From assembly GCA_964019335.1 (NCBI GenBank), contig OZ025732.1, positions 186,001 to 250,000 of the forward strand: 64,000 nt of DNA, given 5' to 3'. Position 1 is the stretch's first letter. Each line of letters starts with the position of its first letter. Origin of the DNA: Diplonema japonicum (Eukaryota; Protista; Euglenozoa: Diplonemea). A program made the position numbers and the translations under genes. Of this stretch, positions 7,277 through 44,370 are shown piece after piece. The notes below the pieces were generated by a model, which worked only from the letters and a program-made list of their open reading frames with translations, ran no database searches and was not told the DNA's origin.

Positions 7277-7792
7277 TTTCCCCGCCAACGCAAAGACAAG
7301 GGTACACACCCTTGACATCTTGGGGGCCCGACGGCACAGCCACCGCAGGCACCAGACAGCAACCGCAGAACGGTGACCGATTAGTGTGCATTTCTCCCTG
7401 AACGGTGAGCACCCACCCGCACACCGAAATTTATCAAATTTTATATTTTTTGGATTCCATTCTCACCTCCATTTTCGTTTTTATTTTTGATTCAGATAAT
7501 TGACATTTCTGTCTTCATCCCCTTTAGCTTCTCGCCCCCCCCACCCTTAGCAAGTCGAAAAGAAGTGGAATTTAAGAGATGAGATAAAGGAGGTTCCTGT
7601 TTTGGAACGTCCCCCTTGTCTCTACTTATCTACCCCTTTCTCCCTTCTGGGACTCGGCCTTTCTTTCTTTTTAGAAAAAAGTGTTTTGTTATTTTCATTT
7701 GCCGAATTCTTTTTCCTCGCTTTTAATGTCAACATGCCCAACTTTATATCAACAAACAACACAGGATATTGAAAGAATACAAGACAAGCGAC

Positions 7793-10700
7793 CATGAGGA
7801 CCATCGGCAGTGACGCTGCAGGCGAGGCTCCCCACCTCTGAGACCATCAGAGGTCTTCCGTGCGGGCATGAAAGAAAGCCCCTGCTTGATCGTTGGTCCC
7901 TTGAAACGAAGTCTCAGCGGCCACTGGTTCATCGCTCTCAGGAAGAAGGGAAGGTACATGGTCAAAGACACCGACGTACGGCTAAGGCTCCAGAGCTTCA
8001 AACACATCTGCGCGACATACTCCGAACACAACATCCTCTGCATCCCAGACGATGTGTGGGCCAGGACAACCCCAGGCAGGAAACACAACACACGTGTTCT
8101 AGACCCTGAGGCTGAGTTTCGCCAGTTTGAGCCGGTCATCACCCCGGCGGGACCCCAGGTAAGCGACTCGAGCGCGCGAAAGACTGAGACCGCTCTCAAC
8201 ACCCCGGAAGATCGCACCCTCCTAACTTATGTCACCCTAGCTGCAGCTATAGCTACATATGCCGCACGCACCCGACGGCTCGACACAGGAGTCGCCGCAT
8301 CAGGTGTGGATGCGCACACCGCTCACTTCGGGCGGCCCGTCGCCACCGCCATCATAGCCCTAGCTGCCGCCGTGGCCGCGCGAGCCGTGCACACCGGATG
8401 CTCTGTCACCACCACGTCTACGGCAAGCCAGACTAACGTGGTCGGAACTGTCCCGCTCTTCCTGAAGGTCTCGAGTCTGCACAAGTCTACACCACAGACA
8501 GCAGTCGCAACCTGTCAGACGGACCGTGTCACAGCACCTGTACTGTTCTCGATATCATCGACGCTCCAGACGGATCCTCCCAGCAGTAGACTGCCCCCGA
8601 TGGACGCCGGACTGGGGTCGCCCTCGGCCGCGGCGGTCAGACTTACGAAGTCTGTCGAAATTCCGACGCCCCGCGCGACCCTGTCGAGGCGGCCGGTTAC
8701 TGAGCCTCGGTTGACACCATGCCTTCCACCGCCAACGGACGTGTCATCCACCCAGCTCGCGGCCTGCACTCAGTCCACCCGTCGGGACACCGGACACGGG
8801 AGTGACACACCGATGCCGTCGTCTACCATGGGACACGCGACACTCCAACCAGTGGTCGGCTCCCAGATTGTGACAACGTCGGCTGTGGAGTCATCGCTCG
8901 CCCGAGCCGTGACAACGCCCGTTCTGGCAGACGCCCCCCTCGGCGCCCGCCAGGTACAGCTCACTCCTTGCATCCAGTCCGTCCATGAGAACATCGGACT
9001 CGGGATGGATACGCCGATGGTCTTCAACCGGTGGTCAACGCCCAGAGAGACACGACGTTGACCCTGGAGCCGCCCGTGGCCCGAGCCGAGGCAGACGCTC
9101 CCCTAGACCCTCACCAGGCGGATGGTGGTTTAGAAATGATCGACCTCACGCAGGACTCCCCGGACAGACCCTCGCGCAAGAAGAAGCACGACGGCACTGC
9201 TTACGAGCACGAAAGCCGTCGTGGTAAGAGTTCCTCCACAGGCGATGGGGATCTTCTCATCCTGCGCGAGCAGTCACAGGGTTTTGATCAGGAAGCCCTC
9301 AACCGAAGGGCCCTCCAGAGACGGATGGATCGATACCTCAGTCTCTTGGTTTACTTCCGGCGACACCCGGAGCTCTTGGACGAACACCAGCGTCAGCTCC
9401 TGTCGGTCGGTCCCCTCCCGATGCACCTGGACACCTCTCCACATCAACTGCTGCTCGAGGCCCGTGACACGGATAGAACTGCCGACCAACAGGCAACCGT
9501 CGCCAACCAGGAACAGCTTCTTCTGATTGCGCACAAGGCGTTGCCTACCACCGAACGTCTTCGGTTGTCTCACGAATGGCACTCGGGGCTGAACACCGCG
9601 GTACAGCAACAGTGGTGGTCGGAGTTCTTCGCCCAAGGCGGCTGGAAACACCCACTCTTCGGTTCCGAGGCCCCAAGAGGTGACGAGACTAGGACTCCAG
9701 GGAGGACCCCTCTCCTGCTCACCTACAACGGGGAGAGGAACAAACGCCCGGAACCCGAAGACGGCCCCGCCCTTCCCGCGGCCAAACGGGATCTCGCCGC
9801 GACGAGGCCGAACACCAGAGTCACTGGACTTGTCGCCCTTAAGAGGCTCACCAGGGAAGCAGACGTCGACGGCCCTGAGGACCTGGATGAGCTTCGACAC
9901 CTGGGCTTCCTTTCCCAGGGCGAGGCCGTCTTTGACCTCAGCTGCATGTCCAGGGCTTGCACACACTTCCTGGGTGAGACCCCCATGGTCACGGTCCCCC
10001 TCGACACACGCGTCGCGATCCCGTGTCTGCTGGTCTGTTATGACTCGACGTGGCTCTACGCTTCCCGCCAGGGACAGGGCTTTCGGTTGCAGACCCAAGG
10101 GTTCAAGGACAAGTCGTATCCGACTGTGGCAGCCCTACTCGCTGACTTCGTGGGGGCAGGGACCCTCTACTACAGCGAGTCACAGTGGTCGACTGTGCTG
10201 AACTCCTACAACTAGGAACTACTGGAGACGACCCTACGCAATGTAGGAGTGCCGGCCCGGCGTGCTACGAGGGCGATAGGCTATGCAGGGTCTCACAGAC
10301 CTCGCACCCTATGATTTTAGTTTCCACCTTTTCCTTTTCCACTTCTTGACTCTTAACTTCCCTTCTGCTTTCCCAACATGGTTTCCGTCCCGGGTATGAC
10401 GTTAAACTGCGTCCGCCGACACATTTGGGTCAACATTCTCTGATGACCAAGCCGTCTTTTTCCGTTTCTTCTCCCCTTCTCTTTGTTATGTTATTTTCAT
10501 TATTCTTTCTGGCGATAGACTGATACGGGCCATGGAAGCAACCTCTGCTTAATTCCTGGTACGTGGGAGGCTCCTCTTGAGGATGTCAGTCACCTTTTCC
10601 CTTTTTTACTCGACTCTCTGTTTTCGTATGCAGTATTTATTCTTTCCCACCCCTTTTTATCTATTTCTTCGCTTCTTCATCCTAACTTAAAACCATTTCA

Positions 10701-11317
10701 GCCACCTCTGAGACCATCAGCATTGAGGCAGTGGCTTCGGAGGAGATGATGAAGGTGAAGGAGAGGATCGCATCGATGGGAGGGTTGGATGTGGACATCT
10801 TCACCCTCACCTTCGATGGGGAGGTGGTGGCGGCAGCTGCTGACGACAGCGGTGGACAGCTCGTCTGAGATCTTCCTTTTGAGGATGGAAGCATGCTTGA
10901 AGTGGTGGTGTGCAAGAGGCAGGCGGCTCTGTTGAAACGAGGGAAGAACACCCCTTTTTTTTACTAATAGTTTAAAGGTAGCGGAAGCACTTCTTGAGCA
11001 CAATGCTGATGTGAAGGCAAGGGACAATGAAGGAAACACGTGTCTGCACTACGCTGTTGAAAGAGGTTGGTTCGAAGTGTTGCCTGTTCTGCTGAGACAC
11101 AATGCAGATGTGACGGCAAGGAACGATGAAGGGAAGACGCCTCTCGATCTTGTCCCCTCTGTGTGATGAGGACATTACCAAAGCGATGCGATACCTGTTG
11201 GAGGACCCGAGTCTCGCTCATGATCTGGAGCTGTTCGAAAGTGGGAGGGAGCTGAGCGACGTCAGCAGGCTTTCTGTTGTTCAACTGATTTCAAAGTGTA
11301 TTAACATGAGTTGGTGA
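7793..11317 (+). pseudogene. Ubl-ankyrin paralog disrupted by PLE insertion, with stop and internal deletion
   Basis: Ubl sequence stops at 7850 and resumes at 10702; in-frame TGA near 10866; ankyrin tail 10938-11293. Confidence 0.8.
7851..10701 (+). mobile_element. 5'-truncated PLE family 1 insertion with 19-bp TSD
   Basis: ccacctctgagaccatcag at 7832-7850 and 10702-10720; interior matches 26995-28782 and supplies the natural ORF end (stop at 10215) and 3'UTR. Confidence 0.92.
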
Positions 11318-16063: not shown

Positions 16064-16488
16064 TAGGCTATGCAGGGTCTCACAGACCTCGCACCCTATG
16101 ATTTTAGTTTCCACCTTTTCCTTTTCCACTTCTTGACTTTTAACTTCCCTTCTGCTTTCCCAACATGGTTTCCGTCCCGGGTATGACGTTAAACTGCGTC
16201 CGCTGACGCATTTGGGTCAACATTCTCTGATGACCAAGCCGTCTTTTTCCGTTTCTTCTCCCCTTCTCTTTGTTATGTTATTTTCATTATTCTTTCTGGC
16301 GATAGACTGATACGGGCCATGGAAGCAACCTCTGCTTAATTCCTGGTACGTGGGAGGCTCCTCTTGAGGATGTCAGTCACCTTTTCCCTTTTTTACTCGA
16401 CTCTCTGTTTTCGTATGCAGTATTTATTCTTTCCCACCCCTTTTTATCTATTTCTTCGCTTCTTCATCCTAACTTGAAACCATTTCAG
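16064..16488 (+). mobile_element. PLE family 1 3'UTR copy
   Basis: Near-identical to 10277-10701. Confidence 0.9.
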
Positions 16489-16794
16489 CTACCTAGAGGG
16501 CTGCATGTAAGGCTATGCTATTGGAGTAGTGTCCAACCGCATAAGGTAGTGTGGCATCTTCAGGGGTGGATAAGTAGAGACAAGGGACGTTCCCAAAACA
16601 CGGAACATCCTTTGTTTCACGCTCTTCCTTTTTTTAAAGTGTGATGCGCTAGTTCTTTTACAAGCCCCCTCCCCCTTTCATAAATCATAAATCACAACAA
16701 CAAAATAAAAACAGAACAATAGAACACAGTATTGAAAAGAAAAGAATTGAAAGAAAGCGAAGGACCATCGGCAGTGACGCCGCAGGCGAGGCTC

Positions 16795-21510: not shown

Positions 21511-22938
21511 CGTGAGTTCAGAAATACAGCATTCTGTAGCTGTAGATCGAGGCCGTCAACTTCGGGTTTCTGCCCAAAGGTCGACCTCGCACCCTATGAT
21601 TTTAGTTTCCACCTTTTCCTTTTCCACTTCTTGTCTTTTAACTTCCCTTCTGCTTTCCCAACATGGTTTCCGTCCCGGGTATGACGTTAAACTGCGTCCG
21701 CCGACGCATTTGGGTCAACATTCTCTGATGACCAAGCCGTCTTTTTCCGTTTCTTCTCCCCTTCTCTTTGTTATGTTATTTTCATTATTCTTTCTGGCGA
21801 TAGACTGATACGGGCCATGGAAGCAACCTCTGCTTAATTCCTGGTACGTGGGAGGCTCCTCTTGAGGATGTCAGTCACCTTTTCCCTTTTTTACTCGACT
21901 CTCTGTTTTCGTATGCAGTATTTATTCTTTCCCACCCCTTTTTATCTATTTCTTCGCTTCTTCATCCTAACTTAAAACCATTTCAGTTGCCTCTAACTGC
22001 ACTACCTTGTGGGCGCCGTTTAGACGCAACCAGAGGCTCTGCAGGTTTTTAACTCTTAAGATTAGTTTTTAAGACTTCTCACAGCTTTGCTGTACCAACC
22101 CCAGCGACCAACAATGGGGACTTACTTCACCGTAGGTCACTCTGCAGGGTCGCATTTATGTAGACCCAAATACGAAACTGATCTCCTCCCGTTCGTCGTT
22201 GAAAGCCGAAGTTTTCGAGGGCTTTCTTCCGAAAAAAGCCCGTTTTTGATAAAATGCCTTTTGACCGCACAACTAGAGACTCCCCACCTCTACATCCTAC
22301 ATCCTGAGAAATCCGCTCAGCCCCTTGTACGTCAAAGAGGGGGTCCATGCGAGACACGGCGTTAGTTGGGCGATGATAGGTTTCGTAAACTGGCCCTGGG
22401 GAGCTCTCGACCGTGCAGTGATAGTCCTGACTGCACGGGTGAACATACAGGCAAGGCATGCACGTTTTTTTGATGAGGTGAGCCGCGCTATATGACTGAA
22501 CGTATATTTGCACATATATATAGTGCCCTATATCCATTCTATGCACCCAACTATTCCTTTTCCCCCCCGTTCTTACCTAGACAAGGAGAACCCTTCGTTA
22601 GCTTTGCTGCCCGCGCAGGCTACGTCCTTCGCACAGGACCAACCTGCACGCTCAGGAAAGTGGTGGAAAAAAAGCCCTCAGTAGGCAACTCGGCTCATGT
22701 TGAAATACTCCGGTCGGACCCCGTTACGGCAACGGGTGCAGTTCATACCCACCATCAGCTCATTATGACATGTCTAGACCTCCTTGTCCCCGGTCCTCTA
22801 ACCCGTCTAGTGCTTTGACCAACTTGTGACTGTCATTCTAAAAGCTGTCCTAAATAAAACTGCTGCTAGGAGTCAGGTAACCAATCCACCTTTGTAGAAA
22901 CCCTCCGTTTTTCTAAAGCATCAAGCATTTTCATAGCG

Positions 22939-25900
22939 ATGAAGAGACCCGCTTACGGCCGCTTTCCAACTCGTTATGACACGCGCGCATCACAGGTGCG
23001 GCGTGCCGCAGGAAATGCACCCCTAAAGATCAATACCTTTCCGTCAACAACGAATAAAACAAACACTTATAAGAAGTATAGTCAGTCGCGCATATATAAC
23101 TCCCACCCCTTCAACTACCGTGCAATCAACAGGTCGCCCTCCAGAGAGGAAGTCATCCGCACCATCTGTGACGCCTATGGTGCGGGTGTCCGAAAGGCCC
23201 TCTTCGTACGTGATGTCGTACAAAACGGCAACGTGCTAAAGGTCCACCTGGAGATCGCCACCAGGGACACACATATTCCCTATGCACTCTTCACGCAGGC
23301 ACTCCTACACCACCATGGAGTCCGTGCCTGTTTCACCGAAGGTGTAGCACCGACGCGTCCCGTCAAGACCTTACGGAAAACGCCTACTACTCCTCAACCG
23401 GCCCACCGGCCGAACCACCGGTCTGGCCCCCAGCCCGCTTATCGTCACGGATACCAACCTGCCTACGATAACCGCTGGGGCAAAGATCAAAACAGGTACG
23501 AGATCCGCAAGGACTTCTTCCTTAGCACAATGGCAAAGGACCAAGTCAAGAAGTCGCGGGACTTCTCCAAGCCTAGCCCGGTCAGCTGCAAACGAAACAA
23601 CGGCAGCATTGACTGGGCCCTCTGGGAGTCTCTCAGCCAGGACGCAGCCGCCAAGTTCATGGCCAAGTACAGCCGCATCGTAAAGAACATGCGCCAAGGA
23701 AAGGCCCCCGAACAGGACGCAGCAGGTATCATCTACCTCGCTGTCGACAAACACGGTGAACCTGTGTACGCAGGGCAGACGTTTAACACCTTACGTCGTC
23801 GTATGCAGGGCCACTGGAGCAGCGCCAGATCGCACAGAGAGAACGCTGAAAGCAACGACACCCGCTTTCACAAGGCCCTCAGGGAAAACGGGGGCCCGTT
23901 ATTCGCTTTCCCCGTCGAATCGATCAACCCCAAGTTCTTCGACGACGCCAAGTCCTTCCGTCGTGTTGCGATCCCCAGGGAGAACCAGTACATCAATAGG
24001 CTGGCTTGCTCCCTTAACATGCGTGGTAGGTTTGCTAAGACGCAGACCCGTCGCCGCCGCAACACGAAACGTAAACCTAAGACGGTACGCGAGCAGCAAC
24101 AGCAGCGACACCAACACCAGGGGCGCTCGAATGCCAAACAGGACCCCAGCAGCAACACTACTACGTCCCCTTCGAACCCCAACAACACCCCCACCAGATC
24201 TACCGCTCCCTCGATACGGCTGAACGACGACGGGGAGCTGTCGATCCAGGCTACTGGGTCCAACTACAAGTCCCTGTGTATGAAGATCACCGCGATGTGT
24301 GCACACCCCGATGTGCTGAACTACGACTTCACTACCTGGGCCCCCAAGACCGTCTTCAGGTACCTGAACTTCCTGAGACGTTACTTCGTCGGGAACTTCT
24401 TCACCGCCAAGATCGCGGCTATCGAACGAGGCCTCACCAACCGCCTCAGCCCTGCCCTCTTGAAAAAGGTGGTCCGCCGAGACGAAGGCTTCGTGTGGTT
24501 CAAAACGAGTTTTGACCACAAGGCCAAGGAGATGATCCTCTGGCGTAAGGTCTTCGAGGACAAGGAGGTAATTGCGGCATGCCCCAAGCCAGCCCTCCTT
24601 CGCAGAGTACACATGTGCAACAAGCTTGGTCAAACCCTCAAGGCCACAGTGTGCAATGTGACGAAGCTCAGCATCGAGACCCCGCGTCCAGAAGCGGCCG
24701 AGCCTACAACAAACTGCCCTTGCTCGAAGCGCAAGACCTCACACACACATGAGGGACACGCCTGCGGACTAGCAGCAGAGGTCATCGATGACGACGAAGT
24801 GAAGGAGGTTCTGAACAGAGGCATGAAGTTCCGCCTCTCAACACACGCCCTCCTCTCTTCCCAAAGTCTCGAGGAGGACATCAACGGGTTCATCACTCAG
24901 AACTTTCGGAGATCCCCTGCAGTGAAAAAGGATTCCTTCCGGAAGGTCCTCCTCGCCAAGGCACAGAACCTTCTCCACCCCCACACTCAGTCTCCGGTCT
25001 TCGACCCCTCAGTCCCGGAGTTCATCAAGACAAAGCTCCGTAAACTTCAGGAGGTCTACGTTTTCCTCCCCATAGACAAAAGCACCCACGACATTGGCGT
25101 CTGTTGCAAGGATCACTACCTCAGGATCCTGCACCAACAGCTTGATAGCCAAGCTTTCGAGCCGGTCTCGAAGCCCTTGGACTCGATCTTCTCCGAAATA
25201 GCTGATCAAGCCAAGACCTTCAACCTCGATTCCACACGTCGCATGCCATACCTGTACGGTACCCTGAAGCTACACAAAGACAAAGTGGGCGTCAGGTGGA
25301 TCTCTGGTGTCTCCTCCACTGATGCACCCCCTGTGGACCAACCAGCAGCGGTCAGCACGCAGGAAATTATGGAGAACTTGGTCGCAGCAGGCGGCGATAC
25401 AACGGGCAATAAAGCTAAGAAACCCACAGCTGCCACCACGGCCCTCCATCTAGAACTGTCTTCCCTCCTGAAGGCTGTCCAACGCGCGCTGCTGGACAAG
25501 GATCTGGAGGGCAGGTCCAAGACCCACGGTCCCGACGGTATCCGACTAAAGCGGTACTGGATCGTCGACTCGGCCGAGAACGTAGCTGCGGATATCAAGC
25601 AGCAGTACACGGCTTACAAAAGCCTGTCCCCTGCCACGTACGACTTCCGGGACATGTACACCAACCTCGACCAAGGGCGTCTGAAAGAGGGGGTTCGTAA
25701 AGCAGTCCAAGAAGCGTTCGACTTCACCGGCAAGAACCTCACCCGTGGCAAGGACGGGAGCTCCTTCACAGATGCCGACGAGGACGATGTCTACACCCCG
25801 GAACGGATCCATAAGCTCCTGGACCTCGTCGTTGACAACACCTATGTTGTGCAGGGTGGCCGCGCCGTTCGTCAAGTAAAGGGTATCCCCATGGGTGGGA

Positions 25901-26805
25901 ACGCCTCCCCCGACCTGGCGAACCTGTTCTGCTACGCCGTGGAGGCCGCATACATCGACAAGCTCCTCGCCGAAGAGGACTGGGAGACCTTGAAACGCTA
26001 CTGCAACGCGTGTCGCTACATCGACGACTTCCTGTTGTGGAGCACTGCGCCACCCCCGGAGGAGCTTTATGGCATGGCTTATGTAAAGACCTCTTCAGAC
26101 CCATGCGACGTCCCCTTTATCGGGATTCGCATCCGGATAGAGCGCCACGAACAAGCTAAGCACAACTATATTAGACTTAGCATTAACGATAAGGCGCAGA
26201 ACTGGCGCTTCCGGCCTACGCGGTTCACCCACGGGCACACCGCGGCGCCCACCACCCAGGGACCAGGCATCTTCAAGGGCATGGTCATCCGTGCCTGCGC
26301 CCTGACCAACAACATCGCGGACCTCAAACGGGAGATCGCTTCAGTGATCTACCTGCTCCTAGATCGCGGTCACGACAAGGGCGGCCTGCGGAAAGCGTAC
26401 AACGCCTTCCTTATCGAACGCGTGGATCGACGCTTCGCCATGGAGAAAAGCAACCTGCTGGCCTTCTTCACGCAAGTCCTCCACCGATACGACGCCAAAG
26501 CCCCGGTAGATTCTTGGTTGCCGGAAAAAACGTACATAGGCCCCAAGAAACCCCGTGCGCTTCCCACGGACGACTCCTCAGCTGACTCCTCAGTCGTCTC
26601 CTCAGTCGCCTTCTCGGGGGGCCCCTCAGACGAGCCCTCGGACAGTTCCTCGGACAGCTCTTCAGGTCTTGTCGAACCGTCACAACCCCGAGCAGCCTCC
26701 GTGGTCTCACCATCTGGTGTCACGGACCAGGTTTTTTCGCCCCCCACCTGCACACCAACAGCGGGGAAGGTCGCCTGGGCCTGGAATGCGGCTGGGCCGT
26801 CATAA
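22939..26805 (+). CDS. PLE polyprotein: N-terminal GIY-YIG endonuclease, Cys/His linker, PLE-type reverse transcriptase
   Basis: GIIYLAV...VYAGQT..TLRRRMQGH...ENQYINRL...LN; CPC...H..GH; YGTLKLHK, YDFRDMYTNL, KGIPMGGNASPDLANL, RYIDD. Confidence 0.92.
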   Translation: MKRPAYGRFPTRYDTRASQVRRAAGNAPLKINTFPSTTNKTNTYKKYSQSRIYNSHPFNYRAINRSPSREEVIRTICDAYGAGVRKALFVRDVVQNGNVLKVHLEIATRDTHIPYALFTQALLHHHGVRACFTEGVAPTRPVKTLRKTPTTPQPAHRPNHRSGPQPAYRHGYQPAYDNRWGKDQNRYEIRKDFFLSTMAKDQVKKSRDFSKPSPVSCKRNNGSIDWALWESLSQDAAAKFMAKYSRIVKNMRQGKAPEQDAAGIIYLAVDKHGEPVYAGQTFNTLRRRMQGHWSSARSHRENAESNDTRFHKALRENGGPLFAFPVESINPKFFDDAKSFRRVAIPRENQYINRLACSLNMRGRFAKTQTRRRRNTKRKPKTVREQQQQRHQHQGRSNAKQDPSSNTTTSPSNPNNTPTRSTAPSIRLNDDGELSIQATGSNYKSLCMKITAMCAHPDVLNYDFTTWAPKTVFRYLNFLRRYFVGNFFTAKIAAIERGLTNRLSPALLKKVVRRDEGFVWFKTSFDHKAKEMILWRKVFEDKEVIAACPKPALLRRVHMCNKLGQTLKATVCNVTKLSIETPRPEAAEPTTNCPCSKRKTSHTHEGHACGLAAEVIDDDEVKEVLNRGMKFRLSTHALLSSQSLEEDINGFITQNFRRSPAVKKDSFRKVLLAKAQNLLHPHTQSPVFDPSVPEFIKTKLRKLQEVYVFLPIDKSTHDIGVCCKDHYLRILHQQLDSQAFEPVSKPLDSIFSEIADQAKTFNLDSTRRMPYLYGTLKLHKDKVGVRWISGVSSTDAPPVDQPAAVSTQEIMENLVAAGGDTTGNKAKKPTAATTALHLELSSLLKAVQRALLDKDLEGRSKTHGPDGIRLKRYWIVDSAENVAADIKQQYTAYKSLSPATYDFRDMYTNLDQGRLKEGVRKAVQEAFDFTGKNLTRGKDGSSFTDADEDDVYTPERIHKLLDLVVDNTYVVQGGRAVRQVKGIPMGGNASPDLANLFCYAVEAAYIDKLLAEEDWETLKRYCNACRYIDDFLLWSTAPPPEELYGMAYVKTSSDPCDVPFIGIRIRIERHEQAKHNYIRLSINDKAQNWRFRPTRFTHGHTAAPTTQGPGIFKGMVIRACALTNNIADLKREIASVIYLLLDRGHDKGGLRKAYNAFLIERVDRRFAMEKSNLLAFFTQVLHRYDAKAPVDSWLPEKTYIGPKKPRALPTDDSSADSSVVSSVAFSGGPSDEPSDSSSDSSSGLVEPSQPRAASVVSPSGVTDQVFSPPTCTPTAGKVAWAWNAAGPS

Positions 26806-28782
26806 ACTGGTTGGCGGACTATGCTGGTGTGGACCGCATCCCCTTCTCTACAATGCAGGAGATCCAGGAGATGTACCACGGCTTCTCACGACTCATCTCC
26901 CCTTCCAGCACTGATGAAGCGCCCGATCCTCTTGGCAACTTTTCCCGCTCGACCTTGTCACGTGCTTGCCTCATGGTCGTTGGTGCAAACTTGGAGGTCT
27001 TCCGTGCGGGCATGAAAGAAAGCCCCTGCTTGATCGTTGGTCCCTTGAAACGAAGTCTCAGCGGCCACTGGTTCATCGCTCTCAGGAAGAAGGGAAGGTA
27101 CATGGTCAAAGACACCGACGTACGGCTAAGGCTCCAGAGCTTCAAACACATCTGCGCACAACATCCTCTGCATCCCAGACGATGTGTGGGCCAGGACAAC
27201 CCCAGGCAGGAAACACAACACACGTGTTCTAGACCCTGAGGCTGAGTTTCGCCAGTTTGAGCCGGTCATCACCCCGGCGGGACCCCAGGTAAGCGACTCG
27301 AGCGCGCGAAAGACTGAGACCGCTCTCAACACCCCGGAAGATCGCACCCTCCTAACTTATGTCACCCTAGCTGCAGCTATAGCTGCATATGCCGCACGCA
27401 CCCGACGGCTCGACACAGGAGTCGCCGCATCAGGTGTGGATGCGCACACCGCTCACTTCGGGCGGCCCGTCGCCACCGCCATCGTAGCCCTAGCTGCCGC
27501 CGTGGCCGCGCGAGCCGTGCACACCGGATGCTCTGTCACCACCACGTCTACGGCAAGCCAGACTAACGTGGTCGGAACTGTCCCGCTCTTCCTGAAGGTC
27601 TCGAGTCTGCACAAGTCTACACCACAGACAGCAGTCGCAACCTGTCAGACGGACCGTGTCACAGCACCTGTACTGTTCTCGATATCATCGACGCTCCAGA
27701 CGGATCCTCCCAGCAGTAGACTGCCCCCGATGGACGCCGGACTGGGGTCGCCCTCGGCCGCGGCGGTCAGACTTACGAAGTCTGTCGAAATTCCGACGCC
27801 CCGCGCGACCCTGTCGAGGCGGCTGGTTACTGAGCCTCGGTTGACACCATGCCTTCCACCGCCAACGGACGTGTCATCCACCCAGCTCGCGGCCTGCACT
27901 CAGTCCACCCGTCGGGACACCGGACACGGGAGTGACACACCGATGCCGTCGTCTACCATGGGACACGCGACACTCCAACCAGTGGTCGGCTCCCAGATTG
28001 TGACAACGTCGGCTGCGGAGTCATCGCTCGCCCGAGCCGTGACAACGCCCGTTCTGGCAGACGCCCCCCTCGGCGCCCGCCAGGTACAGCTCACTCCTTG
28101 CATCCAGTCCGTCCATGAGAACATCGGACTCGGGATGGATACGCCGATGGCTCCCGCCATGGGACACGCGACGCTTCAACCGGTGGTCAACGCCCAGAGA
28201 GACACGACGCTGACCCTGGAGCCGCCCGTGGCCCGAGCCGAGGCAGACGCTCCCCTAGACCCTCACCAGGCGGATGGTGGTTTAGAAATGATCGACCTCA
28301 CGCAGGACTCCCCGGACAGACCCTCGCGCAAGAAGAAGCACGACGGCACTGCTTACGAGCACGAAAGCCGTCGTGGTAAGAGTTCCTCCACAGGCGATGG
28401 GGATCTTCTCATCCTGCGCGAGCAGTCACAGGGTTTTGATCAGGAAGCCCTCAACCGAAGGGCCCTCCAGAGACGGATGGATCGATACCTCAGTCTCTTG
28501 GTCTACTTCCGGCGACACCCGGAGCTCTTGGACGAACACCAGCGTCAGCTCCTGTCGGTCGGTCCCCTCCCGATGCACCTGGACACCTCTCCACATCAAC
28601 TGCTGCTCGAGGCCCGTGACACGGATAGAACTGCCGACCAACAGGCAACCGTCGCCAACCAGGAACAGCTTCTTCTGATTGCGCACAAGGCGTTGCCTAC
28701 CACCGAACGTCTTCGGTTGTCTCACGAATGGCACTCGGGGCTGAACACCGCGGTACAGCAACAGTGGTGGTCGGAGTTCTTC
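26745..28782 (+). pseudogene. Continuation of PLE polyprotein: Josephin-like protease domain, S/T/P-rich linker, SIM-like motif
   Basis: -1 frame reads HLHTNSGEGRLGLECGWAVINWLAD...GNFS...GHWFIALRKKGRYMVKDT; 14-nt deletion at ~27157 relative to the 7851 and 32010 copies. Confidence 0.75.
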
Positions 28783-30039
28783 ATGAGGACGGGCGGAAAG
28801 GAGAAGGGCGCACTGTACTTCATGGATGGCACGCAAAAAACGGAAGTGAAATATGAGAAGAATCCCATGTCACGGAACCTCCTCCTCCCCCACAGGGGGA
28901 CATGTACATGCTGGAGCCACCACCCACGGAGTCGACGCAAACAGACGACGACCCCCATCCTCAGTCAGCGAGACCTGCCCCACGGGGGACCGATGAGGCA
29001 CAGAGAAATCTGAAGGTGGTCATAGACCTGACTGGCGACGACGACGACAAAGTCTCTGCCCCGACCTCGACCCCGCCATCGGAAACGGCGGAACCTGCGC
29101 CACGGACGGAGGAGCTGGAACTGGCATGCCTCACTACCCACGACGGCGACGAAGCCCTGGCCCCACACTCAGCCCCAGCCCCGGCCCCGCCCCTCGCAAG
29201 CCACCACAAGAAGAAGCGAAAGGGAGGCGCATGCCCGGACGTGTACCTTGGCCACGACACCAAGCTGGTAAGGACCAGCACAGATCGTGCACCAGAGCCA
29301 CCTCTGCTCGTCAAATGGCGGTCCAAGAGCGCGAAGCGCGGGCAGTTGTGCGACGGACAAGCGGAGCCCGCAAAGAAGAAAGACCGCTTGGACCTCCTCA
29401 GGGCGAACCGACGGTCGGGCAAGGCCGCCGTTCACGCCCTGGCTGAAGAACATCGAGCGGGTCTGGAAGATAAGCTCTCCCACACGAAACTGGCGACGGC
29501 CGGGATCGTCGAAGCGGAAGGGGAGTGGACGCCAGAAGCCATGATACGGGTCTGCAAACACGTGCTCGGCGAAGAGCCTAAAACCGCGAAGGAACTCGGG
29601 ATTCACATGAAGTTTGTCCGGTTCGCCCTCATCCTGGACTTTGACAAGACGTGGATCATGGCCAGGTATGACTCGGAAGGCTGGAAGGCGAAGGGGGACG
29701 TCGAGAGACGGCAGCAGTTCACGCGGCACGGAGATATGAGAGCCTTGAAGGATCACTACTTCGTGGCCACTAACTGGCTGTTCTTCACCACGCTGCAGTG
29801 GCATAATGTGGGACAGCGCCACCCCCCAAGAACCACCAAGACCTTACGCAAGTAAGAGTGCTGGCCCGGCGAGCTACGAGGGCAAAAAACCTCTTTTCTC
29901 CTTGGAGATGAGAGCATATATTATAGTGCGACATGATCAGACTGGAACGGCCGCCCCGGGGCATCCTCTGCTCAACCCGGCGGACGTGGGAGGCCCTTCT
30001 TCGGAAGGTGCCAGTCGCTTGATCAGTGTCGTCGAATGC
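28783..30039 (+). mobile_element. PLE family 2 3' portion (ORF end at 29855 plus structured UTR)
   Basis: C-terminal domain alignable to ORF 9031-10215 (RVCKHVLGEEP vs RACTHFLGETP; KTW vs STW); UTR motifs shared with family 1. Confidence 0.8.
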
Positions 30040-30107
30040 GCGCTATATTTTATATTTTATAAGTACATATAACAATCGATTGAAAGAAGAAGAACGTTTA
30101 CCAAGAG

Positions 30108-31751
30108 GTGGAGCTGTCTGGGTTTGACAGGGTGAAGGACCTGTACAGGAAGGCGGCAGAGGCTTCTGCGGTGGAGGAGGGGATGTTCCTCTTGCACTTC
30201 GAAGGTGTTGTCTTGGATAATGATGGGACATCTAGCGGCGGTGGGAAGGAGCAGGAGATACAGCAGCTTGGGATGGGGCAGGGGAGCGAGCTTCTCTTGT
30301 GCGGTATTCATAATAAAACACTTGATGTCAGTCATGTGGAACTCTCGAGTCGAAAAGAGGCTGCGAACTGGAAGTTCAAGCCCACGCGTTTCACACACGG
30401 GCACACAGCAGCTCCCTCAACACAGGGCCCAGGTATCCTGAAGGGCATGATGCAGCAAGCGCTTTGCCTCACCAACAGCTCACCGGACTTCAAGAGGCAA
30501 ATTGCAAAGACATACTTCAGTTTGCGCGATCGAGGGCACGAGCACAAACTCCTGAACCGAGCATTCCACGAGTTCCTTTGTGAGCGCGTCAACAAGAACT
30601 ACGGCTGGGAGAAAGGGGAGCTCCAAAGTTTCTTTACCGAAGCAGGGAAGAACTACAGAGCAGGCCGCGAACTTGACGAATGCTACCCGGATCTCGCGTA
30701 TGTGGGACGTAAGGACCCCCGAAAGAGCACAGCCCTCCCCTCCGAACCGACGCAGACAACACAAGAGTCCACCTCCACCGCTGACACGAGCTCGCAAAAG
30801 GAACCACCTCCACAACAGCCGCCCTCAACGGAAACGACACCAATGGAGACACTTACATCGGAATACCCCACGTCGCTACACCAGGAAAGTGGCGAAGGAC
30901 GCGTAGGCCTCGAGTGTGGTTGGGCCGTGGTGAACTGGATCGCAGACTACGCAGAGCTGGCACGCATGCCGTTCGCAGAGATGCAGACAATCCAACACCA
31001 CCTCTGTACCTCGGAGTTCGCCCTGCACACCGAGGGGCATGCGAAGGAGTACCAGCCGAACGAGAAAGGCGACTTCTCCCAAGATACCCTGTCCCTTGCC
31101 TGCCAAAAGATCCTTGGCGAAGAGGCCTCGCTGCAGAGCGTGGTCAAGAGCGGACGGTACCCAGTTCTGGTAATCGGCCCGCCGAAAGGCTCCAGGACGG
31201 GCCACTGGACTACAGCCATCAAAACCGGCAGGTCGTGGTACACCGTGATGGACACAGACAAGGAAGAACACCGTGTCAATGGACTGAGGCAGGTCCTACG
31301 TATGTATGACGAACAGAACATCCTGGGTATCACCGAAGAAAGCTGGGCCAGAGCAAGGACCATAAGGGAGCAGAACGGCGGCGGACCAAAAGCGTTCGAC
31401 GTCCACGCTTGCATCAAGGGAGCGCAGGAAGAGGTAATGCCACCGGTTTCAGGCCCCTGTTTGAGCCAGACCCCTGCAGCTAGCCTCACCCCCAATGATG
31501 ACCCGGTCCCTTCACCTGGTCCGGACTCAGACGCTAATCCGGTCTCGATAGTCCCTGACGACCCAGTGCCCACAACTGGCCCAGTCTACGCCACGGACCT
31601 AGTCAGTTCGCCTGGCCCGATCTCTGTCACGGACGCAGTCCCCACCACAGGCCCGGTCCACGCTTCTAGTCTGATCCCCTCCGCAGACCCGGTTCCAACA
31701 CCAGGCGCAGCCTCCACAGCTAGGCGGTTTGGCACTTTGTTTTCGTCCTAA
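30108..31751 (+). CDS. Chimeric ORF: host Ubl domain fused in frame to PLE RT-thumb and Josephin-like domain
   Basis: 30170-30360 matches 3691-3879; from 30361 ANWKFKPTRFTHGHTAAP parallels QNWRFRPTRFTHGHTAAP of ORF 22939. Confidence 0.6.
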   Translation: MELSGFDRVKDLYRKAAEASAVEEGMFLLHFEGVVLDNDGTSSGGGKEQEIQQLGMGQGSELLLCGIHNKTLDVSHVELSSRKEAANWKFKPTRFTHGHTAAPSTQGPGILKGMMQQALCLTNSSPDFKRQIAKTYFSLRDRGHEHKLLNRAFHEFLCERVNKNYGWEKGELQSFFTEAGKNYRAGRELDECYPDLAYVGRKDPRKSTALPSEPTQTTQESTSTADTSSQKEPPPQQPPSTETTPMETLTSEYPTSLHQESGEGRVGLECGWAVVNWIADYAELARMPFAEMQTIQHHLCTSEFALHTEGHAKEYQPNEKGDFSQDTLSLACQKILGEEASLQSVVKSGRYPVLVIGPPKGSRTGHWTTAIKTGRSWYTVMDTDKEEHRVNGLRQVLRMYDEQNILGITEESWARARTIREQNGGGPKAFDVHACIKGAQEEVMPPVSGPCLSQTPAASLTPNDDPVPSPGPDSDANPVSIVPDDPVPTTGPVYATDLVSSPGPISVTDAVPTTGPVHASSLIPSADPVPTPGAASTARRFGTLFSS

Positions 31752-32009
31752 GAAAAGCAATAAGAATACCTTCTTTTATTCTACTTCTTCGCTTTTATTA
31801 TGAAGGGGGATAGGTGCAGGTAGAGCATGAGAACAAGGGGGTCTCACAAAGACTTCCTTTAACTCATATATATTTATTATCAACATGCCCTTATTTCAAC
31901 AAACAACACAGGATATTGAAAGAAAACAAGAAAAGAGACAAAACCATGAAAGGAAGCGAAGGACCATCGGCAGTGACGCTGCAGGCGAGGCTCCCCACCT
32001 CTGAGACCA

Positions 32010-34266
32010 GGAAGAAGGGAAGGTACATGGTCAAAGACACCGACGTACGGCTAAGGCTCCAGAGCTTCAAACACATCTGCGCGACATACTCCGAACACAA
32101 CATCCTCTGCATCCCAGACGATGTGTGGGCCAGGACAACCCCAGGCAGGAAACACAACACACGTGTTCTAGACCCTGAGGCTGAGTTTCGCCAGTTTGAG
32201 CCGGTCATCACCCCGGCGGGACCCCAGGTAAGCGACTCGAGCGCGCGAAAGACTGAGACCGCTCTCAACACCCCGGAAGATCGCACCCTCCTAACTTATG
32301 TCACCCTAGCTGCAGCTATAGCTGCATATGCCGCACGCACCCGACGGCTCGACACAGGAGTCGCCGCATCAGGTGTGGATGCGCACACCGCTCACTTCGG
32401 GCGGCCCGTCGCCACCGCCATCGTAGCCCTAGCTGCCGCCGTGGCCGCGCGAGCCGTGCACACCGGATGCTCTGTCACCACCACGTCTACGGCAAGCCAG
32501 ACTAACGTGGTCGGAACTGTCCCGCTCTTCCTGAAGGTCTCGAGTCTGCACAAGTCTACACCACAGACAGCAGTCGCAACCTGTCAGACGGACCGTGTCA
32601 CAGCACCTGTACTGTTCTCGATATCATCGACGCTCCAGACGGATCCTCCCAGCAGTAGACTGCCCCCGATGGACGCCGGACTGGGGTCGCCCTCGGCCGC
32701 GGCGGTCAGACTTACGAAGTCTGTCGAAATTCCGACGCCCCGCGCGACCCTGTCGAGGCGGCCGGTTACTGAGCCTCGGTTGACACCATGCCTTCCACCG
32801 CCAACGGACGTGTCATCCACCCAGCTCGCGGCCTGCACTCAGTCCACCCGTCGGGACACCGGACACGGGAGTGACACACCGATGCCGTCGTCTACCATGG
32901 GACACGCGACACTCCAACCAGTGGTCGGCTCCCAGATTGTGACAACGTCGGCTGTGGAGTCATCGCTCGCCCGAGCCGTGACAACGCCCGTTCTGGCAGA
33001 CGCCCCCCTCGGCGCCCGCCAGGTACAGCTCACTCCTTGCATCCAGTCCGTCCATGAGAACATCGGACTCGGGATGGATACGCCGATGGTCTTCAACCGG
33101 TGGTCAACGCCCAGAGAGACACGACGTTGACCCTGGAGCCGCCCGTGGCCCGAGCCGAGGCAGACGCTCCCCTAGACCCTCACCAGGCGGATGGTGGTTT
33201 AGAAATGATCGACCTCACGCAGGACTCCCCGGACAGACCCTCGCGCAAGAAGAAGCACGACGGCACTGCTTACGAGCACGAAAGCCGTCGTGGTAAGAGT
33301 TCCTCCACAGGCGATGGGGATCTTCTCATCCTGCGCGAGCAGTCACAGGGTTTTGATCAGGAAGCCCTCAACCGAAGGGCCCTCCAGAGACGGATGGATC
33401 GATACCTCAGTCTCTTGGTTTACTTCCGGCGACACCCGGAGCTCTTGGACGAACACCAGCGTCAGCTCCTGTCGGTCGGTCCCCTCCCGATGCACCTGGA
33501 CACCTCTCCACATCAACTGCTGCTCGAGGCCCGTGACACGGATAGAACTGCCGACCAACAGGCAACCGTCGCCAACCAGGAACAGCTTCTTCTGATTGCG
33601 CACAAGGCGTTGCCTACCACCGAACGTCTTCGGTTGTCTCACGAATGGCACTCGGGGCTGAACACCGCGGTACAGCAACAGTGGTGGTCGGAGTTCTTCG
33701 CCCAAGGCGGCTGGAAACACCCACTCTTCGGTTCCGAGGCCCCAAGAGGTGACGAGGTCGACTGTGCTGAACTCCTACAACTAGGAACTACTGGAGACGA
33801 CCCTACGCAATGTAGGAGTGCCGGCCCGGCGTGCTACGAGGGCGATAGGCTATGCAGGGTCTCACAGACCTCGCACCCTATGATTTTAGTTTCCACCTTT
33901 TCCTTTTCCACTTCTTGACTTTTAACTTCCCTTCTGCTTTCCCAACATGGTTTCCGTCCCGGGTATGACGTTAAACTGCGTCCGCCGACACATTTGGGTC
34001 AACATTCTCTGATGACCAAGCCGTCTTTTTCCGTTTCTTCTCCCCTTCTCTTTGTTATGTTATTTTCATTATTCTTTCTGGCGATAGACTGATACGGGCC
34101 ATGGAAGCAACCTCTGCTTAATTCCTGGTACGTGGGAGGCTCCTCTTGAGGATGTCACCTTTTCCCTTTTTTACTCGACTCTCTGTTTTCGTATGCAGTA
34201 TTTATTCTTTCCCACCCCTTTTTATCTATTTCTTCGCTTCTTCATCCTAACTTAAAACCATTTCAG
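32010..34266 (+). mobile_element. Second 5'-truncated PLE family 1 copy in a Ubl-ankyrin paralog
   Basis: Same site (ccacctctgagacca at 31995-32009 and 34267-34281) and same diagnostic internal deletion as 7851-10701, plus extra deletions; probably a duplicate of one insertion. Confidence 0.9.
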
Positions 34267-34780
34267 CCACCTCTGAGACCATCAGCATTGAGGCAGTGGC
34301 TTCGGAGGAGATGATGAAGGTGAAGGAGAGGATCGCATCGATGGGAGGGTTGGATGTGAACTTCTTCACCCTCACCTTCGATGGGGAGGTGGTGGCGGCG
34401 GCTGCTGACGACGGCGGTGGACAGCTTGTCAGAGATCTTCCTTTTGAGGATGGAAGCATGCTTGAAGTGGTGGTGTGCAAGAGGCAGGCGGCTCTGTTGA
34501 AACTCTCTGAGATGGGGATCAAAGTGAAAGGAAGGGACTTGTACGGAGTCTTACGTGATGACATTTCAGATTTCATGAAAGAGAAGGCCGTAGTAGAGAA
34601 CGACAAGATGTGCGAGGTTTTGAACTTTCTCCTGGATGCTGGGGTGAGTGGTGGGGAGGAGGAGGCCCTTCACATGGCGGCCCAGCACAATCTTCCTTCT
34701 TGTGTGGATGTCCTCTTGATTCGCACTTCTGTGGATGTGAATTCAAAAGTGTCTCTTCCTGACGATTGGCATGATCCGTC
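34267..34780 (+). pseudogene. Ubl-ankyrin paralog remainder, 3'-truncated
   Basis: Near-identical to 20330-20848. Confidence 0.8.
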
Positions 34781-39450: not shown

Positions 39451-39766
39451 CGTCCCGGGTATGACGTTAAACTGCGTCCGCCGACGCATTTGGGTCAACA
39501 TTCTCTGATGACCAAGCCGTCTTTTTCCGTTTCTTCTCCCCTTCTCTTTGTTATGTTATTTTCATTATTCTTTCTGGCGATAGACTGATACGGGCCATGG
39601 AAGCAACCTCTGCTTAATTCCTGGTACGTGGGAGGCTCCTCTTGAGGATGTCAGTCACCTTTTCCCTTTTTTACTCGACTCTCTGTTTTCGTATGCAGTA
39701 TTTATTCTTTCCCACCCCTTTCTATCTATTTCTTCGCTTCTTCATCCTAACTTAAAACCATTTCAG
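39451..39766 (+). mobile_element. PLE family 1 3'UTR copy
   Basis: Near-identical to 10386-10701. Confidence 0.9.
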
Positions 39767-39795
39767 CAACCCCCCCCCCCCCCCCCCCCACTAGG

Positions 39796-41082
39796 GCTAT
39801 TGAAATGGTTTTAAGTTAGGATGAAGAAGCGAAGAAATAGATAAAAAGGGGTGGGAAAGAATAAATACTGCATACGAAAACAGAGAGTCGAGTAAAAAAG
39901 GGAAAAGGTGACTGACATCCTCAAGAGGAGCCTCCCACGTACCAGGAATTAAGCAGAGGTTGCTTCCATGGCCCGTATCAGTCTATCGCCAGAAAGAATA
40001 ATGAAAATAACATAACAAAGAGAAGGGGAGAAGAAACGGAAAAAGACGGCTTGGTCATCAGAGAATGTTGACCCAAATGTGTCGGCGGACGCAGTTTAAC
40101 GTCATACCCGGGACGGAAACCATGTTGGGAAAGCAGAAGGGAAGTTAAGAGTCAAGAAGTGGAAAAGGAAAAGGTGGAAACTAAAATCATAGGGTGCGAG
40201 GTCTGTGAGACCCTGCATAGCCTATCGCCCTCGTAGCACGCCGGGCCGGCACTCCTACATTGCGTAGGGTCGTCTCCAGTAGTTCCTAGTTGTAGGAGTT
40301 CAGCACAGTCGACCACTGTGACTCGCTGTAGTAGAGGGTCCCTGCCCCCACGAAGTCAGCGAGTAGGGCTGCCACAGTCGGATACGACTTGTCCTTGAAC
40401 CCTTGGGTCTGCAACCGAAAGCCCTGTTCCTGGCGGGAAGCGTAGAGCCACGTCGAGTCATAACAGACCAGCAGACACGGGATCGCGACGCGTGTGTCGA
40501 GGGGGACCGTGACCATGGGGGTCTCACCCAGGAAGTGTGTGCAAGCCCTGGACATGCAGCTGAGGTCAAAGACGGCCTCGCCCTGGGAAAGGAAGCCCAG
40601 GTGTCGAAGCTCATCCAGGTCCTCAGGGCCGTCGACGTCTGCTTCCCTGGTGAGCCTCTTAAGGGCGACAAGTCCAGTGACTCTGGTGTTCGGCCTCGTC
40701 GCGGCGAGATCCCGTTTGGCCGCGGGAAGGGCGGGGCCGTCTTCGGGTTCCGGGCGTTTGTTCCTCTCCCCGTTGTAGGTGAGCAGGAGAGGGGTCCTCC
40801 CTGGAGTCCTAGTCTCGTCACCTCTTGGGGCCTCGGAACCGAAGAGTGGGTGTTTCCAGCCGCCTTGGGCGAAGAACTCCGACCACCACTGTTGCTGGCA
40901 AGAAACGTTTCCGTTTCCGTTCCCGTTCCCGTTCCCGTTTCCGTTTCCATACTTTTCAAAATTCTTATGGAAACGCGTTTCCTTCTTAAGGAAACATAAG
41001 GAAACGTTTCCGTTTCCGTTTCCGTTTCCGTTTCCCTTTTTTTCAAAAAATGCATGGAAACGCGTTTCCATGCCAGCATAGC
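39796..41082. mobile_element. Small MITE with GCTATGCTGGCA TIRs and (GGAAAC)n core, split by the PLE
   Basis: gctat (39796-39800) + gctggca (40894-40900) rebuilds the left TIR; tgccagcatagc at 41071-41082 is the right TIR; unsplit left end at ~45544. Confidence 0.7.
39801..40893 (-). mobile_element. 5'-truncated PLE family 1 copy, inverted
   Basis: Reverse complement matches ~9604-10700. Confidence 0.92.
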
Positions 41083-43034: not shown

Positions 43035-44370
43035 ATGAGCTTCTCGAGGTACATCGGCAGGAAGACCATCGCCAAGGCAGCTGTGCTCTCCGTCTTGTGG
43101 GGTGTGTGCCTGTATTTCGTGGTGATCTCCGTCCCGGGTATGACGTTAAACTGCGTCCGCCGACACATTTGGGTCAACATTCTCTGATGACCAAGCCGTC
43201 TTTTTCCGTTTCTTCTCCCCTTCTCTTTGTTATGTTATTTTCATTATTCTTTCTGGCGATAGACTGATACGGGCCATGGAAGCAACCTCTGCTTAATTCC
43301 TGGTACGTGGGAGGCTCCTCTTGAGGATGTCAGTCACCTTTTCCCTTTTTTACTCGACTCTCTGTTTTCGTATGCAGTATTTATTCTTTCCCACCCCTTT
43401 TTATCTATTTCTTCGCTTCTTCATCCTAACTTAAAACCATTTCAGGTGCCTGTATTTCGTGGTGAAGCTGTCCACAGAGTTCAGCAGCACGGGGCGGAAG
43501 AACACAGCCAATTTGAAAATGGAGAGGGTGAAGACTATGGAACCACCGTTTTTCATGATATCTACCCAGGTGCCGGTTGGAGGGTGCAGGTACAGACTGA
43601 AGAAATGCGAATTTGTACAGGACACGGGCAGCGCGAATTTCACCAGAACAGACTGCAGCCCGGCCGTTCTCGAAAAAAGCTACCAGACAAAAACCTCCCT
43701 CCTCAACGCCACCATAGCCAGGGAGCTGGGCGTGCTGTTCAGCTCTCCATTTGATATGTTGAACCTGCAGTTCGATCTAGTCCACAGTGGGAATAGTTCC
43801 GTGGCGATGAACCCTCAGGCCTGTGGTCTCACAGATCCTGATACACATGAAAGATCACAATTCGTCCTACCCATCGGGGACCATGTGGCCATAGGTGCGA
43901 TTGAGCGGAACGATGCAAACATGGATCTGAACCGGTTCGGTGTGCCTTCGTACATAGGGTACGGGCAGATGGCACACTTCACCTTCTCCCTCGAGCAGGA
44001 GATCTTCATCGGGAGCAGCAAGCCTCAGAACACCACCACGTTCGGACTCTCGCAGTTTCCGAAGTACCCGGACCACAACGAGTTCGAGCTTCGCATCAGC
44101 GCTGCGTCGTTTCTCGTCCGCCGTATTGTTCACAAGGAAGGCCAGTCGCTCATCGACCTCATGGGAGGGATCTTCGGGTGGGTCGGTGTACTCACAGGAG
44201 CGTGTATCCACAGTCTGTTCTCCACCGTTGTCGACATGGCCACGAAGCCCAAGAACGGACGGCAGAAACAAGTTAAAGAAGCCGACGACGAAAGAAGCGG
44301 CTTGAACTATGCCATTCTAGAAGAGGAAAGGTGCAAATCGGTTTCTTCCCTTCCTGTTCACCAGATATGA
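43035..44370 (+). CDS. Two-TM DEG/ENaC/PAC-like channel subunit, interrupted by a 320-bp PLE tail
   Basis: MSFSRYIGRKTIAKAAVLSVLWGV (43035-43105) joins CLYFVVKLSTE (43446 onward), collinear with paralog 46102. Confidence 0.75.
43126..43445 (+). mobile_element. PLE family 1 3'UTR insertion with 20-bp TSD
   Basis: gtgcctgtatttcgtggtga at 43106-43125 and 43446-43465. Confidence 0.95.

Follow-up and report, generated by a model that had tools for sequence, protein, structure and literature searches.

A divergent Josephin-like domain, predicted to be a deubiquitinase, in Chlamys-type Penelope-like retroelements of Diplonema

Proteases of the ubiquitin system carried by transposons (Ulp1, OTU and Josephin-like) have been noted repeatedly and, to our knowledge, never explained. 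Plant Mutator-like elements (MULEs) carry Ulp1-like proteases. Among retroelements, a Josephin-like Cys protease has been described in the Dualen/RandI non-LTR (long terminal repeat) retrotransposons (Kojima and Fujiwara, 2005, as cited in PMC8557442), and a Penelope-like retroelement (PLE) of the Chlamys type from Chara braunii, Chlamys-1_cBra, was reported with "weak homology to Josephin" (Craig et al., 2021, PMC8557442). We have analyzed a window of 64 kb (the whole stretch from position 186,001 to 250,000 of contig OZ025732.1; all positions given here are window coordinates) from the genome of Diplonema japonicum (62.5 Mb, 132 contigs), that contains copies of two PLE families. In both of them a domain of about 165 amino acids (aa), with the pattern Cys...GxFS...HW...DTD, follows the thumb of the reverse transcriptase (RT). 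A previous reading of the window from sequence only (the sequence-only reading) knew of no Josephin-like domain in PLEs, a belief that the Chara element contradicts. The Josephin-bearing PLE has a brief published precedent, and the Diplonema case is a well-supported new example of it, not a new kind of thing.

The copies of the domain on which the analysis centers are the following:

26742..27200, plus strand, family-1 Josephin-like domain (translation; profile hidden Markov model, 195 bits on the intact copy)
30870..31379, plus strand, family-2 Josephin-like domain, the sequence that was modelled

The family-1 domain (frame 0) contains the motifs LH...LECGWAVINW, GNFSRSTLSRAC, GHWFIA and KDTD, with the putative catalytic codons at 26787-26789 (Cys), 27066-27068 (His) and 27111-27113 (Asp). 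In family 2 the motifs are LECGWAVVNW, GDFSQDTLSLAC, GHWTTA and MDTD, and the equivalent codons are found at 30915-30917, 31203-31205 and 31251-31253. All the motifs that had been quoted from both families are present after the RT thumb and, as had also been noticed, the family-2 domain lies in frame with its thumb in a common open reading frame (ORF, 30108-31751). The two domains share about 45% identity; still, Cys, His and Asp are invariant across three in-genome families (alignment A1), so that the proposed conservation of a putative triad over divergent families holds. Genome-wide there are at least 43 matches to the domain. Cys and His are kept in all 23 full-length copies, 22 of which have D-T-D and one N-T-D, and the dN/dS between subfamilies 1 and 1b was 0.30 for the domain against 0.56 for the preceding linker. 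These numbers indicate that the domain is under purifying selection and is not a chance pattern.

The description of the element as a polyprotein with this domain stands for the intact family-1 element (L031:1218-7673:-), in which a single ORF of 2152 aa comprises GIY-YIG, RT and Josephin-like domain, the intact copy running on through the domain rather than ending at the thumb. It does not stand for the family-1 copy of the window. Compared to the majority of genomic copies, this one has a deletion of 4 nucleotides (nt) at 26745 and another of 14 nt at 27156, leaving the domain out of frame with the RT ORF (22939-26805) and its C-terminal end frameshifted. The alignable part of families 1 and 2, with the RT at one end and the Josephin-like domain at the other, covers about 400 aa at 43.6% identity; beyond it both continue with low-complexity spacers that are unrelated.

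We have modelled the family-2 domain with AlphaFold 2 using a domain profile of 21 sequences (alignment A2), the same that was used to search the PDB. The model had a pLDDT of 92.4 and a pTM of 0.88. A papain fold was retrieved with it by Foldseek, with the Josephin domain of ataxin-3 in first place (1yzb, E 4.4e-5) and C39 peptidase domains next, and the nearest solved structures were, by a clear margin, eukaryotic Josephins. When the A2 profile was compared to 177,635 PDB sequences only four matches appeared at E <= 10, all of them Josephins (ATXN3L, 0.0096; ATXN3, 0.057-0.067), in an alignment that pairs GWFS with GFFS and HW with the HW motif of the catalytic His. No meaningful match to PDB sequences was obtained from single domain sequences or from a three-sequence profile; a DnaJ hit of the latter was due to chance, and the 21-sequence profile was needed for the Josephin matches. 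When all ORFs and the domain itself were scanned with Pfam, the domain had no match apart from a chance one to TANGO6_N. In the model, C16 opens a helix (16-27), H112 stands just before a strand (114-118) and D128 ends another (123-128), i.e., the Cys-His-Asp set would occupy the canonical positions of the papain fold as putative catalytic residues. In family 1 the Asp comes 15 residues after the His, presumably the same spacing as that between His119 and Asn134 of ataxin-3. The model thus bears out the papain-fold placement of the three residues, and the Josephin-like Cys/GxFS/HW/Asp spacing proposed from the sequence is upheld by both structure and profile searches. As modelled, the domain has a papain fold and is Josephin-like, though divergent, and it falls outside the Josephin criterion of Pfam.

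A bacterial-origin domain of the C39-like double-glycine peptidases, unrelated to Josephin, would be the other way to explain this fold. The neighbours found by a language model were all clan CA peptidases (C39, Josephin, C58 and IpaJ), and clusters of Peptidase_C39 were at the top (score 0.91). We consider such an origin very improbable, given that Josephins score 2-3 Z higher than C39 with more residues aligned, that the sequence profile matches only Josephins, that Pfam C39 (PF03412) is not matched and that the model contains the Josephin-type helical hairpin (helices 35-52 and 55-61).

Relatives of the domain are few. Among 1.84 billion representatives, searched exhaustively with HMMER, there were only 21, those with a name coming from the diplonemids Flectonema neradi and Lacrimia lanifica, and most of the database homologues that cover the positions keep Cys, His and Asp. 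A word-based search for full-length relatives (1184-3766 aa) with the domain found none. The proteins in which the domain appears are diverse. P0015 (Flectonema) and P0005 combine a PLE RT with the Josephin-like domain, P0009 (Flectonema neradi) is a long interspersed nuclear element (LINE) with apurinic endonuclease (APE) and RT that has the module at the N-terminus, and P0010 and P0021 are MULE/SWIM transposases with the module at the C-terminus. Found in PLE, MULE and LINE, the module is a portable transposon accessory and does not behave like a polyprotein-specific protease. Two or three partly degenerate copies of the module are found in a single protein, P0016.

In sister PLEs we have found a different protease at the same place. 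P0025 (NCBI) has, after the thumb and a Pro/Thr linker, a complete domain of the ubiquitin-specific proteases (USP/UCH; UCH 56.7 bits, E 3.6e-15) in which both the Cys box and the His box are intact, and its RT is nearest to a protein of Diplonema papillatum. From that species, P0026 (DIPPA_14062) is collinear with family 1 from GIY-YIG to thumb and continues with the start of the USP Cys box, while in a Diplonema ambulator transcript (P0153) RT and a USP-like domain are found in one ORF. In an RT tree of nine rows, some with long branches, the three Josephin-bearing PLEs are separated from the USP-bearing ones by a branch whose support is 92/96. Searching the D. japonicum genome with P0025 matched only the RT part, and no USP-type PLE was seen; neither did we find any mention of USP-bearing PLEs in the literature searched. 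The finding of two deubiquitinase families at one position in sister PLEs is the strongest argument for ubiquitin removal as the selected function. Two other RT sequences came up: P0024, annotated in D. papillatum as 'Dynein intermediate chain 2, partial', in which WD40 repeats are joined to a PLE RT and which is probably a chimeric gene model, and P0028, a PLE-like RT assigned to a gammaproteobacterial metagenome-assembled genome, probably a mis-binned eukaryotic contig.

Viral papain-like proteases cut their polyproteins. A similar role could be imagined here, the domain acting in cis or trans on the 2152-aa polyprotein to separate, for example, the endonuclease (EN) and RT from the C-terminal extension. 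The very long single ORF and the flexible low-complexity linkers that flank the domain on both sides would be appropriate for this, and there is an NGG just after the family-2 domain. Self-processing nevertheless appears unlikely. Neither Gly-Gly nor any other candidate site is common to families 1 and 2, and the module is also fused to MULE transposases and to the N-terminus of a LINE ORF, where there is no polyprotein to cut. Besides, the sister PLEs have at this place a USP, a known ubiquitin-specific family, and the closest folds are Josephins, which are isopeptidases. The sequence-only reading had left polyprotein processing and ubiquitin/SUMO removal side by side. Of these, removal of ubiquitin or of a ubiquitin-like protein (Ubl) is the more likely and the one we favour, and processing is less likely because a conserved cleavage motif is missing and the module occurs in proteins that need no processing.

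The C-terminal extension of the polyprotein adds two more parts. Within the otherwise unalignable spacer, families 1, 1b and 2 have (V/I/M)IDLT followed by acidic or Ser residues. With acidic residues this is what we take to be the PIAS-type SUMO-interaction pattern. Further on, families 1 and 2 share a C-terminal domain (28% identity, alignment A3). These features are located as follows:

28288-28302, MIDLT
29019-29033, VIDLT
Family-1b frame L035:3437-6397:+, aa 629, the same motif
29289-29852, plus strand, second Josephin-like domain, without catalytic residues

Against the Josephin-like profile the C-terminal domain gave 6.9 and, for the window copy, 14.7 bits with HMMER. The comparison of A3 with A2 by hhalign had a probability of 88.8% (E 2.5e-6, 106 columns), with Thr/Ser in place of Cys and TW in place of HW. 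The window copy has Ser at the Cys position (29415) and KTW for GHW (29646). The model of the C-terminal domain was poor (pLDDT 55). With moderate confidence we take this domain for a second one of the Josephin-like kind, in which the catalytic Cys and His have been lost. In the comparison of subfamilies 1 and 1b the dN/dS was 0.52 for the low-complexity spacer, 0.23 for the second part of the extension and 0.18 for the C-terminal end.

Two alternatives for the upstream domain are related to these parts. One is that it works on a Ubl (SUMO, NEDD8, Urm1/Ufm1-like or lineage-specific) instead of ubiquitin, as the PIAS-type SUMO-interaction motif (SIM)-like sequence with its acidic residues in all three families might suggest. 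We regard this as improbable, since it is ubiquitin-specific Josephins that come out best in the fold and profile comparisons, and since sister PLEs have a USP at this point. Moreover, a SIM is equally expected for a deubiquitinase acting on SUMO-primed ubiquitin chains, the situation described for ataxin-3 (PMC5391139). The pair of an active and a dead Josephin domain, together with the SIM-like motif, suggests for the PLE a similar link to SUMO-primed ubiquitylation. The other alternative is a non-catalytic ubiquitin-binding or scaffold module, whose conserved Cys, His and Asp would have a structural role alone. A Josephin-like copy that is clearly dead and strongly constrained (dN/dS 0.18) is already present in the polyprotein, and some database homologues have no Cys. 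Yet the three residues are invariant between families that are only about 45% identical, are kept in most of the database homologues covering them and would lie at the canonical papain-fold positions in the model. How such a domain looks once its function is lost can be seen in the dead copy, which the upstream domain does not resemble. A mere scaffold seems to us quite unlikely, less so only than a C39 origin.

On balance, we consider it probable that the upstream domain is an active deubiquitinase, or a close Ubl isopeptidase, working for the PLE, a prediction that draws on sequence and model. Such an enzyme could strip ubiquitin from the protein or ribonucleoprotein of the element itself, against ubiquitin-dependent turnover, or it could edit ubiquitin on host factors at the nicked target or the integration intermediate, blunting a ubiquitin-dependent restriction. 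The dead domain and the SIM-like motif may be the ubiquitin/SUMO-binding or targeting parts.

Several observations weigh against an active deubiquitinase. The Pfam Josephin model (PF02099) matched neither the three in-genome domains (E <= 10) nor any of the 21 sequences of A2 (E <= 1). Genome-wide it found nothing at E <= 10, no Josephin gene of the host either, and it was silent in 14 of 14 control genomes too, hence this last negative is weak. The PDB profile matches are marginal, even the best one (E 0.0096). No obvious counterpart is seen of the oxyanion Gln that in ataxin-3 precedes the Cys by five residues; a conserved G(E/Q)G is found seven residues before the Cys. The Cys is replaced in a few database homologues (P0012, P0013 and P0016). 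As to the USP-bearing sisters, P0025 and P0026 are gene models that could be chimeric, and P0153 is a single transcript ORF. Finally, there is no RNA run among the sequencing runs on record for this genome. All in all, the compact and confidently modelled domain, the young intact copies and the USP-bearing sisters make the need of a retroelement for a deubiquitinase directly testable.

A wider scenario is possible, if doubtful. Diplonemid PLEs, LINEs and MULEs might share a transposon-specific Josephin-like deubiquitinase cassette that is exchangeable for a USP, and that with the SIM and the dead domain would form a counter-defence unit, reversing a host pathway of SUMO-targeted ubiquitin ligases that would restrict retrotransposition at DNA breaks.

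Judged from their protein motifs, the window PLEs are two families of the N-terminal-endonuclease (Chlamys-type) Penelope-like retrotransposon. The family-1 ORF has GIY-YIG at aa 263-303 (nt ~23725-23847), with a Pfam match just under cut-off (E 4.5e-4) and GIIYLAV...VYAGQT seen directly, and RVT_1 at aa 955-1037 (E 8.3e-5). Between EN and RT there is a CxC motif (NCPCSKRKTSHTHEGHAC at aa 592-609; NCPCS at nt 24715, as NCPCS...HTHEGHAC), kept in D. papillatum P0026 as ECPCQ...GHAC. The RT has the motif PIDKS ('DK', without G) at nt 25069 and YIDD at nt 26017, and its thumb ends with EKTYIGPKKP at nt 26524, before a Ser/Thr/Pro-rich linker. The EN lacks a CCHH zinc finger, there being a single Cys in aa 263-365. 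An N-terminal EN, the CxC motif, the absence of the CCHH finger and the 'DK' motif define the Chlamys type, the last two setting it apart from Naiad (PMC8557442, section 9), so that the Chlamys/Naiad layout proposed earlier, with its N-terminal GIY-YIG and RT, is recovered on the Chlamys side. The ORF is collinear over aa 224-1287 with D. papillatum DIPPA_14062, and the nearest RTs to that of family 1 are diplonemid proteins from other Diplonema species. The D. papillatum genome paper and the PLE survey (PMC8557442) make no mention of PLEs in diplonemids. The range of N-terminal-endonuclease PLEs is extended here to Euglenozoa, a host group absent from the survey's list.

The intact protein is ordered as N-terminal region, GIY-YIG nuclease, CxC motif, RT with thumb and Ser/Thr/Pro linker, followed by the Josephin-fold domain (a putative Cys isopeptidase), a family-specific spacer with the SIM-like motif and the catalytically dead Josephin-like domain. 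The unit of the intact element measures about 7.9 kb with terminal repeats of about 400 bp (pseudo-LTR), that are found at both ends of L031 and of the family-1 copy of the window. Several 5'-truncated PLE fragments also lie within the window; pseudo-LTRs and 5' truncation are both typical of PLEs. The remaining features are:

7850..10708, plus strand, family-1 3' fragment with the C-terminal half of the Josephin-like domain at 7850-8089 (98.8% identity to L031 5400-8280; tblastn)
21583..21993, plus strand, pseudo-LTR upstream of the element body, where part of the family-1 3' end is repeated in tandem (99% match to L031 element positions 7870-8280, reverse complement)
21994..28782, plus strand, family-1 PLE body, cut at element position ~7202 and followed by family-2 3' sequence (99.5% identity to L031 over 7202 nt)
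22939..26805, plus strand, family-1 ORF of 1288 aa, with the GIY-YIG and RVT_1 matches given above
27184..28782, plus strand, family-1 low-complexity spacer of the C-terminal extension, with MIDLTQDS at 28288-28302 (ORF and motif; dN/dS as above)
28902..29855, plus strand, family-2-type C-terminal polyprotein part, with VVIDLTGDDDD at 29019 (99.3% identity to the family-2 3' end in L033)
30108..31751, plus strand, 5'-truncated family-2 PLE with RT thumb, Ser/Thr/Pro linker, Josephin-like domain and start of a Pro-rich spacer in one ORF (97% identity to L033)
32008..34273, plus strand, family-1 3' fragment, from inside the Josephin-like domain to the element 3' end with pseudo-LTR (98.4% identity to L031 5489-7259, then 7759-8280; tblastn)

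More short fragments of the family-1 pseudo-LTR or 3' end are scattered at 16064-16494, 39451-39774, 39795-40897 (minus strand) and 43128-43454, some of them solo pieces of ~320-430 bp. A chimeric or nested junction of family-1 and family-2 PLEs is located at 28782-30077. The match of family 1 to the intact element ends at 28782, and that of the family-2 3' sequence (99.3%), carried by an ORF with its start at 28902, has begun by 29017 at the latest. Elsewhere in the genome, PLE copies (L033 and L034; G000:C81:257500-267000 and G000:C85:370000-379500) have next to them ORFs that contain ankyrin repeats and leucine-rich repeats of the BspA type (IGDSFLSGCERL-like). The genome also has at least five near-identical copies of an intron-less cytosolic HSP90 (G000:C32, C58 and C9; L051-L053), some about 14 kb apart (C58). 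They are 98% identical to the D. japonicum transcriptome and 86-89% to the next relatives, including Flectonema neradi and Rhynchopus humris.

Compared with the eukaryotic Josephins (ataxin-3, ATXN3L and JOSD1/2; PF02099, MEROPS C86), the PLE domain has the same fold, order of helices and strands, hairpin and Cys...GxFS...HW...Asn/Asp spacing. It differs in its low identity (14-17%), a score that stays below the Pfam threshold, the Asp that stands for Asn134, a Cys preceded by two additional residues, the absence of a clear oxyanion Gln and the fusion to a retrotransposon protein. The bacterial Josephin-like deubiquitinases and ubiquitin C-terminal clippases (bioRxiv 10.1101/2024.07.24.604956; PDB 9f5t, 9fn4 and 9g7g) are similar in having a divergent Josephin fold and in the use by a parasite or pathogen against host ubiquitin. 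The Ulp1-like proteases of NeSL/Utopia LINEs (PMC4640811) are likewise Cys proteases of clans CA/CE and of the ubiquitin/Ubl system that serve as transposon accessories, although they belong to another family (His-Asp-Cys order) with SUMO specificity. Closer in kind, Dualen/RandI have a Josephin-like accessory protease borne by a retroelement, for which interference with host protein degradation was proposed. They belong to another class of retroelements (LINEs with APE and a restriction-like endonuclease), and the comparison with them is one of description.

Chlamys-1_cBra is, as our PLEs, an N-terminal GIY-YIG element with a long ORF (about 1800 aa there) and a Josephin-like motif in the C-terminal extension after the RT. 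The two were compared by description only. In the survey its Josephin homology is called weak and is given without further analysis. Its second C-terminal motif is Cys/His-rich, whereas the second module of the Diplonema PLE is a dead Josephin-like domain, and its host is a streptophyte alga and not a diplonemid. What the Diplonema elements add to this precedent is the firm fold and profile evidence, the intact 2152-aa architecture, the diplonemid host, the replacement of Josephin by a USP, the dead second domain and the SIM-like motif.

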